Both the position numbers and the translations under genes were made by a program. DNA of 64,000 nt from Blastocystis sp. Blastoise (taxonomy: Eukaryota; Protista; Bigyra: Opalinata), in NCBI GenBank assembly GCA_039096225.1, contig JBBPEB010000030.1:744001-808000 (forward strand). Reading direction: 5' to 3'. Under the pieces are notes generated by a model. The model did no database searches and was not told the origin of the DNA. It saw only the letters and a list, made by a program, of their open reading frames with translations. Numbering within the stretch: the stretch's first letter is position 1; every line of letters begins with the position of its first letter. Below, one piece after another: positions 298 to 20,386 of the stretch.

Positions 298-1604
298 TTA
301 TACTCGTCTTCCCATGATTAATTCTGCAGTAAGGAACATGATAGCGGCATTAGGGACAACACGGAGTACATGTGCATAACAACCAGCATATAGAGCTTTA
401 AGACCTTCTTCTTTATATATAGTAACAAAACAATTCCAAAGACCTTTATATTTAAGTATATATATATATATATATATATATATATATATATATATATGTA
501 TACGAGATGCACCATTTTGTCTTAATCTTGTTCTAACAACCTACATATATATATATAAATATATAAATATATATATATATACTTCATGTGGATATGTACA
601 CAGTGTAGCGATTAACTTGGATAAAGCAGCATCCAAAAAACTTCTCCATTTTGGTGTTTCTTTTCCTTTTTGTTTGTATACGCTATCACTGTAAGACTTG
701 ATATATTCATACATCGTAAATTGAATAGCAGTTTCAGATAGACCTAAATAGCTGGCATTTAATCCTTTGAAAAACCCTTTCATTCCCGCCTCTTTATAGA
801 TTTCCCGGGTAATATCTTTAATACCACGATGATTCTCAGTGTATATATATTAAGGAGTATTTAAATAATGAATCAAAATTATTAATAAAATCATAATAAA
901 CAAAATAACTTAAATAAATCAATAAAAAGGATATATATTGATTGAGTTGAATTCTAGTTTTGATAACCCAAATAGGACAAGTAGCAGTAACTGCAACAGA
1001 TCCCGCCAAAAGAGACGATATTAATGCACTTGAAATGTGATTCAATGCTGAATATTTCTTCAACATATCTTTACTATTCTCATAACTATATAATAATTAT
1101 TATTTTTATAATATATTTATTATATAATATTTAATATAATAATAAATGTAGTAATAATAATAATAAATACACATAGAAATGAATAGCTCTTGAAGGAGCG
1201 ACACTTATAGCCATTAACTAAACAAAAAATGAGTTACAAAAATTATGTTACAAATATAACATACAAATCCACCTCTCCAAAGACCATGAATTCCTTCAGT
1301 TTTTCCTATGTCATAAATACCACGAAATACACCTGAAAATCCTTTGTATTCCTCGAATATTCCACTCTATAGAGAATGATTGTTACTAATAAAAGATTTT
1401 AAATAATATATACTTGATACCTGGTTTTGATGACTTCTAACGGACATGTACATAATGCTCCTAAATACAACAAATAAACCTAATGCAGAATAATAAGTAA
1501 AATATACCAGTGATTCCACCCACCAAACCTGCAACAAAGCTATTAAACCCACTGCTTTGTGAATTCTTTACTTGTTGACTAAAAGGCGATCCTTTTGGTT
1601 GCAT
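298..1604 (-). CDS. Mitochondrial carrier (SLC25A33/36 / Rim2-like pyrimidine nucleotide carrier), 8 exons
   Basis: Spliced translation has three carrier signatures (TCPLEVIKTR, TCPIWVIKTR, TYPHEVVRTRLR) and C-terminal LRVVPNAAIMF. ATG 1604-1602, TAA 300-298. Confidence 0.9.
456..503 (-). other. Non-canonical GT-AC intron (48 nt, almost pure (TA)n)
   Basis: GCATCTC|gtatacata...tatatac|TTAAATATAAAGGT gives RQNGASLKYKGL. There is no AG in the interval. Retention would be in frame but would insert RIHIYIYIY... Confidence 0.75.
841..934 (-). other. U12-type AT-AC intron
   Basis: 5' site ATATCCTTTT, branch site TCCTTAAT about 8 nt before the terminal AC. Joins IQLNQY|TENHRG in frame. Confidence 0.85.
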
Positions 1605-2730
1605 CGTCAAATAAGTTGATAACAATTATAGATAATCGAATTGTTTCTAGCTGATCCAGCACGTAAATAATGACTAGAACTACTCAAATAAGTAATAGCA
1701 ACAGCCAACTATGAAATAAAAAGAATTTGTTAGAAGTTCTCTTTTGAATGGTGAAACTAATGGGGAACTTTAATTAATCATGAAAATGATTCGTTCTTCA
1801 GTTCATTTTCTCATTTTTTCTGAAGAACAACAAAAATAGAATCATTTTCATACCCATCTTTTTCTATGATTATTTTTGCTGTTTCAAGAATTAGAAGCAT
1901 GATATTTATGTATCAGTAATATATTCATTATTGTTATAATACGAGAATCTCAGAGTTGCATGATCATCATAATATTTAGTAGAATTGATATTGTAAATGA
2001 TGTTTTTTATTTGTTTTGAACAAAGTACTTTTGTATTGCATCCAGAAAGCATAGCCTATCCTGAGGACAGAATTAAAAGTGTGTATGATTAGAAACAACA
2101 TTCCAATGAGAAATTCACTTCATTTCGAAGATATATGCTATATTCTTGTTTTTTTATAAGTTATTCATCCTATTAAAACTATTGTCGAATGTTCCATTTC
2201 ATCTGTATGATTTTTAGAGCAGAAATCGATGTCTATAAAATTTCAAAAAAGAACAACTGAAGTTCTATTCTTATACTGCACATTGATTCTACATATATTT
2301 TTAAGATGAGATCAATCACTATTTTACTATTCACTATCTTCTATGCCTCTTCAATAATGAATAAACACTATGAGTACACTATAAAACAGTATTCTTCTTT
2401 TTTTTTGCATATTTTTATTTGATTCAAGAAAGTATTAAACTCTAATTAGTATACACAAGCATAGAAAATGTTTCATTTTCAAACAAAAATATATTAAATT
2501 TCTATACTTATAAAATGCTCATATAAAAAGAAAAAGATAAGAGGCGTTCTTTTCGTTTAAATATATAAAAATATAACATTCTTTTTCCGACTTCTGATTC
2601 CCGTGATTATAAGTATATCTTCTGAGAGATTTTATTTTTCGCCTTTGAAAATGACGTCTGTGCGTCATTGTGTTGGTGGATTAATTTTTGTGTTTTATTC
2701 AAGTCTATTTATATATTTTTGTTGGTGAAA

Positions 2731-18409: not shown

Positions 18410-19154
18410 TACATAAAAATATTTCTTAATATAATTCACTATACACTCTTGTCTATCTTATATATGATTTTCAGTCTCTCTGTATGTATTATAATAAAAA
18501 ACTTTGATAAATATGTATTAAAATTGTTTTGTAAAAGTTAAACTGTATATGAACTCATCAACATAATAAAAAAATAGGTTTATTCAACATAATCAATATA
18601 AATCATTTGAGACTAGGTATATTATTCTATTATTCATATTTTTTTAAAGAGTTTTAATTAATTCTGCATTTTAACTAAATTGTATTGCATTCTAATAATT
18701 AAGAGAATTCGGAAATCATAATATGTTTCTTAGAAATCGTCATTAAGAGTGATTTTATAAGAATCGACTCAAAATACTTAATAAACCATCATTCATGTAA
18801 TAACTAAATATAAAAGAAGAAAAAATACTTCAAGTATCCAACAAGTATATAAATATATGGAATAGAAACCATTTAGGAAAGAACAACCATTTATAAAAAA
18901 AGTCTTTTCTTTGATTTGTGAAGACAAATATGATAACCAATGAATTTCGTTAAAAGGAGAATAAAAATCAGTATTGATTGGACAAAAAAATAATATTCTT
19001 ATTACCTGACCACGAATGAATACGGGAATACAGTCTCTTTACTCCAAAACACTAAGAATATTCCTGACTATTTCAAATGTATTAATTATTGGATAGAAAG
19101 TAAATTTAAAAAGGAATAGGATATTATTTTTTTTTTGCTTTTTATACTTTGAAA

Positions 19155-20386
19155 ATGAAGGCTATACTTTTCTTTGTTTTCCTTTGTTTTTCTCTTGCTC
19201 ATAAAGAAAACAAAAGTATTATTCTTATTATAAATAATCTATTGTGTTATACAATTTAGAATGTGGTACCTACGATATGGGTTGTGAAAACAGTATGATT
19301 ATATTGCTATTTTTATTTCTAATTAAGAAATAGGTCTTTCTTTAACTGGTATTTTATCTTCTAATGAAAAAGGTGACTTAACTCGTCTTAATGCTACTGT
19401 TGGATTTTATGGTTCAGAGAGTTGTCTTCCTGCTGAAAAAGCTTTCAATGTTAGAATCAATGTTCCTTTCTCTCGTTGCTCATTTAATACTACTTCACAA
19501 GCAGATTCCTGTAATTTATCTTCAGGGGTCTCAGCTTATTTTGATATGATTGATGAAGCTACTTGTAAATCTCAATTAGGTATGGAATGTGTTCCTCCTG
19601 TTCATAATGGTGAAACCATAGATGCTCTGTATGTATATATATATATATATATTAAATATTTATGAATAGTCGATCTATCGTTATTATATATATAAATATT
19701 AATTAAATTTTTATTTCTCAATGTAATTCTAATAATTTTAAATTAATTATAATTCTCTAAAGTCATGATAATTATACTTGTAAGATTGGTGGTCTTCTTG
19801 ATGTTATGGAAGTTATTAAATTAAATCTTGGACCAGGCGACACAGTTAAATATCTTCAATTTAAATTTAATGAAACACATGCTTCTATTCTTCTTTCTGA
19901 TTCTGATTTAGCTATTCCTAGAACTGGAGATACTGGTATATTTATAGTTTTAATATATGCTGTTATTGTTTTTTTTAATTATTTTTTATTATATTTGCTA
20001 TTTTATAACTTTCTTCTTCTTATTTTTAATTCTTTTAATAATATCATATTTATATATATAATCATAATCATCATTATAATATTCTATATAGGTTGTTTTG
20101 AACATCCAAGAAAACATGATGGCTTACGTATATATATTATGACTATATTTATATCTTCACATATATATTCTATTTAAAAAAAATATATACTATTTATATA
20201 TATTATAAAAATCAAGTGTTATTGATTTTTTCTATATATATACCTATTTGGGTTATTATTATTATTGCTATCGTCTCTATTGCTCTTGTTATTCTTGTTA
20301 TTGCCATATTTATTCATTTAATCAAGGATCATAAAAAGAATTCAAAAGCTTCAGAAGATCAAAAAGACGCACTAGTTAATGTTTAA
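19155..20386 (+). CDS. Cys-rich type I membrane protein, tandem paralog 2 (6 exons)
   Basis: RLNATVGFYGSESC, CVPPVHNG, LPIWVIIIIAIV TM. Confidence 0.82.
20128..20243 (+). other. Probable GT-AC intron homologous to GT-AG introns of paralogs 1 and 3
   Basis: TTAC|gtatat...tatatac|CTATTTGG, versus TTAC|gt...tatag|CTTTATGG (18177-18260) and TTAC|gt...tatag|CTAAATGG (21905-21994). An in-frame AAG at 20214-16 is a possible alternative acceptor. Confidence 0.65.

Follow-up and report, generated by a model that had tools for sequence, protein, structure and literature searches.

A probable context-dependent subclass of GT-AC spliceosomal introns in a tortoise-clade Blastocystis genome

Can introns of the major spliceosomal type end in AC instead of AG? 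Few nucleotides of eukaryotic genes are as invariant as the G at the end of introns, and the question of whether it can be replaced is raised by five intervals in a 64,000-nt stretch of the genome of Blastocystis sp. Blastoise (33.34 Mb in 34 contigs, ~24% G+C). This whole stretch, G000:C20:744001-808000, is referred to below as the window. An earlier note, made from the sequence alone, had described these intervals as GT-AC introns, and all five indeed have the layout C/GTATA...TAC/ in the window sequence (the slash marks an exon boundary): the preceding exon ends in C (position -1), the interval starts with GTATA and it ends in TAC. In two of them (456-503 and 7718-7858), the dinucleotide AG is wholly absent. 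We know of no textbook splicing rule that predicts a C-ending upstream exon. The evidence described here suggests that these intervals probably represent a genuine, context-dependent GT-AC subclass of introns, with the terminal C taken from the genome assembly.

Five AC-ending introns and their removal from mRNA

Two RNA data sets bear on the junctions, namely, RNA contigs of the same organism (X1) and a poly-A gut metatranscriptome from a different study (X2). The X2 contigs carry single-nucleotide polymorphisms relative to the window and, therefore, come from an independent strain. The X1 contigs sit on exons, with adapters at the contig ends, and between window positions 2600 and 8590, the number of listed differences from the assembly is 0, so that the local assembly is accurate in exons. 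The five introns, along with the lines of evidence that bear on each, and the two host genes covered by RNA are as follows.

3508-3724, + strand: GT-AC intron, sulfatase intron 3, phase 2, 217 nt (X1 length accounting, homologue alignment)
3825-3983, + strand: GT-AC intron, sulfatase intron 4, phase 0, 159 nt (X1 and X2 RNA joints, homologue alignment)
7718-7858, - strand: GT-AC intron, 141 nt, precedes the final exon of a gene for a CaMK-like kinase (X1 and X2 RNA joints)
20128-20243, + strand: GT-AC intron, 116 nt, phase 1, precedes the transmembrane exon of a surface-protein paralogue (paralogues; outside RNA coverage)
456-503, - strand: candidate GT-AC intron, 48 nt, G-T-A-T-A-C-(AT)n-A-C, in the late part of a mitochondrial carrier gene (carrier motif; outside RNA coverage)
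2731-5284, + strand: sulfatase gene, 8 exons, 466 codons, hosts two GT-AC introns (X1 record 1; Pfam Sulfatase in homologues)
2731-3078, 3185-3245, 3342-3507, 3725-3824, 3984-4124, 4295-4393, 4489-4706, 5017-5284, + strand: sulfatase exons
7597-11020, - strand: CaMK-like kinase gene, 13 exons, hosts 7718-7858 (X1 record 3, X2 record 8)

The joint between positions 3823 and 3983 skips 159 nt in both X1 (depth 612) and X2 (depth 242). Its placement is ambiguous by one base: what is listed as CG..TA is the same as GT..AC at 3825-3983. At the joint 7717/7859, both data sets lack 141 nt, which read GT..AC, with a two-base ambiguity. The earlier note had pointed out that GT..AC and CG..TA boundaries might be interchangeable, and the RNA joints demonstrate this ambiguity directly. 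Neighbouring joints in the same contigs are canonical GT..AG (4124/4295 and, on the minus strand, 8332/8398). The joint of the remaining sulfatase intron, 3508-3724, was dropped from the joint listing, with 3684-3724 masked as repeat. In X1 record 1 (1370 nt), which covers the sulfatase transcript in full length, window positions 4498 and 5017 correspond to record positions 863 and 1072, and the spacing in this record equals the exon sum, so that exactly 217 nt are removed at 3508-3724; an alternative intron, 3483-3687, was ruled out, being 12 nt off the length of this record. Thus, RNA from two independent sources shows the GT-AC junctions of 3825-3983 and 7718-7858 in use, X1 also shows that of 3508-3724, and the transcript assemblies contain these genes in spliced form. 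Precise splicing at the junctions proposed in the earlier note is borne out by RNA joints for two introns and by length accounting for a third, and is supported for 20128-20243 by the paralogues described in the next section.

The coding sequences are consistent with these junctions. Single exons served as queries in the database searches, whereas the joined exon models were confined to translation, the accounting of transcript length and a single local tblastn. The joined sulfatase model comprises 466 codons with 0 internal stops; retention of 3825-3983 would introduce a stop at its codon 2 (GTA TAG). The kinase model with 7718-7858 spliced out has an intact open reading frame up to the stop codon. 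The public model of the sulfatase is wrong at exactly both AC introns. The database protein P0001 (244 aa; window 2731-3830, + strand) is identical to exon 1, crosses 3508-3724 via an invented micro-exon, with the intron-derived residues LLALLF and ITIYIYILHIYT (LLALL maps to 3558-3572 or 3581-3595, and ITIYIYILHIYT to 3690-3725), and terminates two codons into 3825-3983 (TDPV followed by the stop), compared to the true product of 466 residues.

Also within the intron 3508-3724, an X1 contig (depth ~15) maps to 3551-3624 (+ strand); 74 nt of a tandemly repeated segment are missing from it, and it carries 4 other letters there. The repeat varies in length, or else the assembly deviates slightly within this intron.

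Of all these introns, 456-503 is the least secure. It is itself in frame and free of stops, and there is an in-frame canonical GT-AG alternative, 444-503, reaching 12 nt further. Both stop-free retention and this alternative were missed in the earlier note. Solved (PDB) mitochondrial carriers align from LKYKG, the residues right after the AC junction, and the alternative 444-503 keeps the frame but would delete LKYK. By this comparison of sequences, the carrier motif still favours the AC junction.

Homologous introns and the ancestral 3' end

Are the AC ends ancestral, or do they represent a change at older introns? Both sulfatase junctions align without gaps to P0005 (498 aa) and P0166 (466 aa, from an RNA contig of another strain): at the first junction, NTCT/WIHDV corresponds to RTCNYTHEM and NNCSWVHDL, and at the second one, LTDP/HAGGW corresponds to YTVPHAGGW and WTDPHAGGY. 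Introns at the same two positions are present in a sulfatase paralogue on contig C22 (L026) and in an ENA metagenome contig from a related organism (L027), and in both genes, both introns have the form T/GT..AG. The latter contig (1160 nt, 38.6% GC, 89% protein identity to the window sulfatase, introns of 31-33 nt at the conserved positions) points to a Blastocystis-like lineage near the tortoise clade that nevertheless has short introns of the kind usual in human subtypes. The surface-protein intron 20128-20243 also has canonical counterparts, in two tandem paralogues.

18177-18260, + strand: canonical C/GT..AG intron of tandem paralogue 1, homologous to 20128-20243
21905-21994, + strand: canonical C/GT..AG intron of tandem paralogue 3, homologous to 20128-20243

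All three introns interrupt the same 'tta c/ct' codon ahead of the transmembrane exon.

The presence of GT-AG introns at matching positions in the sulfatase paralogue, the relative and the two tandem paralogues implies that the AC ends are derived, resulting from G-to-C changes at old introns. Moreover, given the T/GT..AG form of the introns in L026 and L027, the exon -1 C and the terminal C are both derived in the window sulfatase, at two introns of one gene. Origin by target-site duplication or as young introns was ruled out because the introns are common to the paralogues and the related lineage. The suggestion of the earlier note that these introns might be intermediates between AT-AC and GT-AG also finds no support, inasmuch as the homologous introns in the paralogue and the related lineage are plain GT-AG. 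A homologue search with the kinase exon yielded no match, and among the contigs that encode the query exons, there were RNA-derived or distant ones only, with no independent DNA.

Intron type, exon context and frequency

To place the AC introns among the bulk of the introns of this genome, we used the calls of our own splice-aware gene finder, based on a hidden Markov model, on the 267 kb of sequence with which it was trained (the window and the loci L002-L021); these amount to 356 introns. They share the donor consensus G100 T99 A95 T90 A66 T85, or GTATAT, and have acceptors of the form (TA)n-TAG. All five AC introns begin with GTATA, with the pattern GTATA[TCG]AT like the bulk introns, which agrees with the assertion of the earlier note that their 5' sites are U2-like rather than U12-like. 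The deviation is confined to the 3' AG: all five introns end in TAC in the assembly.

The last exon base across the 356 introns is A in 31%, C in 8%, G in 31% and T in 28%. A C at this position precedes all five AC introns vs 29 of the 367 GT-AG introns (Fisher p 4.8e-6, with the alternative model of intron 1 set aside in this count); for the four best-supported AC introns alone, the association is still pronounced (Fisher p 5e-5). Thus, the connection between exon -1 C and the AC end, which the earlier note had noticed, is a real correlate, and in the tally over 267 kb, AC introns follow C exclusively. The first base of the downstream exon (+1) is a pyrimidine in all five cases. However, canonical introns with C at -1 share this feature (57%, vs 31% overall), so that it is not an independent signal.

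The frequency of the AC introns turned out to be lower than the ~4% of introns with a relaxed 3' rule that had been put forward in the earlier note: they comprise 5 of ~100 introns in the window, credible GT-AC introns in the other ~244 kb examined number 0, and the class accounts for ~1.3% of the introns in 267 kb and for 15% of the introns after C. The observation that GT-AA introns are missing holds within the window but not elsewhere on the same contig, where a UBC9-like SUMO-conjugating enzyme gene contains a GT-AA intron with A at exon -1 (L016 3805-4017, - strand, that is, G000:C20:283805-284017). The junction of this intron, PAQSPPVQIY(K) joined to QSEAAYERKV, has the same spacing as in the solved UBC9 structure. 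The exon and the intron both end in ATATAA, so that their last bases are identical, and this GT-AA intron indicates that the relaxation of the last base extends beyond C.

When acceptor dinucleotides were left free in the gene finder, the 3' end was unplaceable and AT or TT solutions displaced the true AC introns, so this setting gave no unbiased tally. When only AC was allowed, the gene finder recovered 4 of the 5 introns and proposed nine others, none of which held up. One of these (L003 1556-1700) lies within CT-rich low complexity sequence, two are U12-type AT-AC introns, the one in L016 is really the GT-AA intron described above, and the proposals in L006, L012 (two), L011 and at window position 33898 have no coding support on one side. 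A candidate of the form G/GT..TATAC, with G at -1, is located at 42683-42898, in a ten-intron membrane-protein gene of the window. A phase-excess statistic for X/GT..TAY pairs had too little power even for the canonical TAG. Whole-genome counts of patterns (CGTATATA..TATATAC, 268; CGTATATA..TATATAG, 464; GGTATATA..TATATAG, 1766; GGTATATA..TATATAC, 549) were swamped by internal TATATAC and by donors on the opposite strand.

The locus L003 also harbors, at 1-2428 (+ strand; G000:C20:20001-22428), ~2.4 kb of GA-rich low complexity sequence (CT-rich on the opposite strand) that is open in several frames and misleads gene finding based on open reading frames.

Competing explanations and comparison with known systems

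How could introns with a terminal C be spliced? The interpretation towards which we lean is that these are genuine bulk-type (U2-like) spliceosomal introns, with C instead of G as the last base, that are excised exactly at C/GU...UAC/. A more specific possibility, to which we give slightly less than even credence, is that the major spliceosome of the tortoise-clade Blastocystis accepts a UAC 3' site if and only if the 5' exon ends in C, which would imply coupling between exon -1 and the last intron base in the second step of splicing. At least two complementary pairs, counted from +2/-2 inwards (GUA...UAG), are present in 92% of the canonical introns, and terminal complementarity of at least 6 bp is found in 21% of the GT-AG introns of the 267-kb sample; in the AC introns, the terminal pairing spans 3-10 bp when G1:C(-1) is counted. 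Nearly all introns have the form GUAUA...UAUAG, so that complementarity of their ends starts at +2/-2. For the AC introns, we propose that a Watson-Crick G1:C(-1) pair takes the place of the contact between G1 and G(-1), lengthening the terminal helix to that range, and that the second catalytic step tolerates this pair. The pairing of GUAUA and UAUAG ends across the genome may be what enables UAC acceptance. The change from G to C, and not from G to A or T, would be the product expected from templated correction of a (TA)n quasi-palindrome.

Several observations weigh against this interpretation. RNA support extends to 3 of the 5 introns only, and at 456-503, there is the rival canonical intron 444-503 that is also in frame. 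The source of the terminal C itself is an assembly of Nanopore data with Illumina polishing, and in all five cases, the intron ends in the same base as the exon before it, which is also the signature of polishing or conversion by spliced reads. Among the C/GT introns, those that end in AC are 5 of 6 in the first 20 kb of the window vs 0 of 28 elsewhere (p 2e-5), a clustering that would not be predicted by a general splicing rule. Finally, in yeast and mammals, an unmutated G1 combined with C(-1) reportedly performs poorly as a substrate of the second step (Parker and Siliciano in 1993, and later work).

Among the alternatives, the one to be taken most seriously, even if we consider it unlikely, is that these are ordinary GT-AG introns in which the terminal C is a systematic consensus or polishing error, for example, caused by exon-exon reads that impose the last exon base. 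Apart from the match between the last intron and exon bases, this explanation would fit the concentration of the cases within 20 kb in which some transcripts have high coverage (contig depths of 612, 270 and 45) and the way the genome was assembled: for the Rus-B strain (Russian tortoise), Nanopore reads were assembled with Flye, and the result was corrected with racon (four rounds), Polypolish (three rounds, with Illumina DNA reads from a MiSeq) and POLCA (one round) (PMC12129017). The annotation employed STAR, StringTie, BRAKER3 and Mikado, and the paper is silent on non-canonical splice sites (PMC12129017). However, the changes are not independent of base type and of distant sequence context, as errors would be: all are from G to C, and all have a C at exon -1, 48-217 nt upstream (p 5e-6). 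Errors of this kind should strike introns with A or T at -1 (59% of the introns) far more often than those with C (8%), and as the earlier note anticipated, polishing with spliced reads should produce AA and AT ends as well, whereas in the sulfatase gene, the transcript of which is very highly covered, AG is retained by all four introns that follow A or T. The donor-side counterpart of such errors is not seen in these genes, the exons match the X1 RNA contigs with 0 differences, a random error rate cannot yield five G-to-C acceptor changes among ~35 introns, and reads of 300 nt make polishing straightforward for a base that adjoins unique exon sequence. Two scans of metagenomes for the acceptor junctions gave 0 matches.

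The boundaries could also lie one base upstream, with introns of the form CG...UA and a downstream exon starting with C. The RNA joints, ambiguous by one (3823/3983) or two (7717/7859) bases and in the former case listed as CG..TA, would be compatible with this placement, which describes both constraints, the C before GT and the C at the end, equally well. We nevertheless deem it improbable because intron positions +2 and +3 would then be G and U, a register that fits neither the GUAUAU consensus common to all other introns nor the ACAGAGA box of the U6 snRNA, the gene of which is fully canonical, and because the homologous introns of the paralogues are cut at /GT. Still less credible is removal by the minor (U12-dependent) spliceosome. 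This machinery tolerates varied 3' terminal nucleotides, and its small nuclear RNAs appear to be encoded in the genome (U6atac, 63.8 bits, above the cut-off; a full-length U12 candidate, 46.8 bits, below the cut-off). A true U12-type AT-AC intron, 841-934 (- strand), resides in the same carrier gene as 456-503; it starts with ATATCCTTT (5' site ATATCCTTTTT), has the branch-like TCCTTAAT ~11 nt from the terminal AC (TCCTTAAT-N10-AC) and joins IQLNQY to TENHRGIKD. The intron 7718-7858, too, includes a partial match to the U12 branch site, TTCCTTATT, 16 nt from its end. However, the U12 5' site RTATCCTT is absent from all five AC introns, which begin with GTATACAT, GTATATAT, GTATAGAT, GTATATAT and GTATATAT, and in four of the five, the branch site TCCTTAAC has no counterpart at a distance of 10-20 nt from the 3' end. 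Only a very slight chance attaches to the idea that the joints reflect template switching by reverse transcriptase at direct repeats or (UA)n hairpins, or else transcription from DNA copies that miss the segment. The flanks of the skipped segments do form short direct repeats (C, AC, TAC), and the ends are self-complementary, but conserved reading frames are restored when the segments are skipped, two independent studies have this form in their transcript assemblies, the skipped segments coincide in position with introns of the paralogues and the related lineage, and retention of 3825-3983 would end translation at once. We thus return to genuine U2-like introns as the preferred interpretation, with the caveat that none of these readings explains why the cases cluster regionally or why changes at exon -1 and at the intron end come in pairs.

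Additional features were observed alongside those involved in the argument. The U6atac and U6 genes (G000:C21:544821-544937 and 551506-551617, respectively) are on the same strand, 6.6 kb apart. A second candidate U12-type AT-AC intron, ATATCCATATAT ... TTCTTTATAC, is located at ~42135-42309 (- strand), in the ten-intron membrane-protein gene mentioned above. Two tRNA genes with equal scores, 48887-48959 (+ strand) and 49159-49231 (- strand), are inverted relative to each other and 200 nt apart.

The combination of G1 with C(-1) is normally a dead end for the second step. If the terminal C is real, these introns are a natural, efficiently spliced GT-AC set that follows a simple rule (the exon ends in C), with AG versions at the matching positions of paralogues, and hence a ready system for the study of 3' splice site docking and of the role of exon -1. 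In these genomes, RNA-guided pipelines will cut such genes short if they drop non-canonical junctions. In the full-text literature, no context-bound GT-AC class was found described, nor any such class for Blastocystis.

Comparison with known types of introns helps to delineate the position of this class. With the bulk U2 GT-AG introns, the AC introns share the GTATAT donor, the (TA)n-rich tail (T at -3, A at -2), the size range, the positions shared with paralogues and precise removal; the differences are the terminal C and the exon -1 base, which is always C compared to 8% in the bulk. The AT-AC introns of both the U2 and the U12 types, which combine A1 with C(-1), share the AC end, and in these, the first and last nucleotides are thought to touch in the second step; unlike them, the introns in the window start with G, so that the pair would be a Watson-Crick G:C rather than A with C, and have no ATATCC site. 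Non-GT-AG ends are also tolerated in the non-canonical introns of Fritillaria borealis and Oikopleura and in the non-conventional introns of euglenids, the paired ends of which help intron definition. In these organisms, the 5' end or both ends are altered in many introns, whereas here, only the last base is affected, in a small, context-bound subset. The same terminal dinucleotides, also supported by RNA, are present in the curated annotation of Ganoderma lingzhi, where GT-AC introns number 49 of 92,000, or 0.05% (PMC11590231). Those introns are sporadic, with no context rule reported, whereas the class in the Blastocystis window makes up ~1.3% of introns overall and 15% of those after C, and is clustered.

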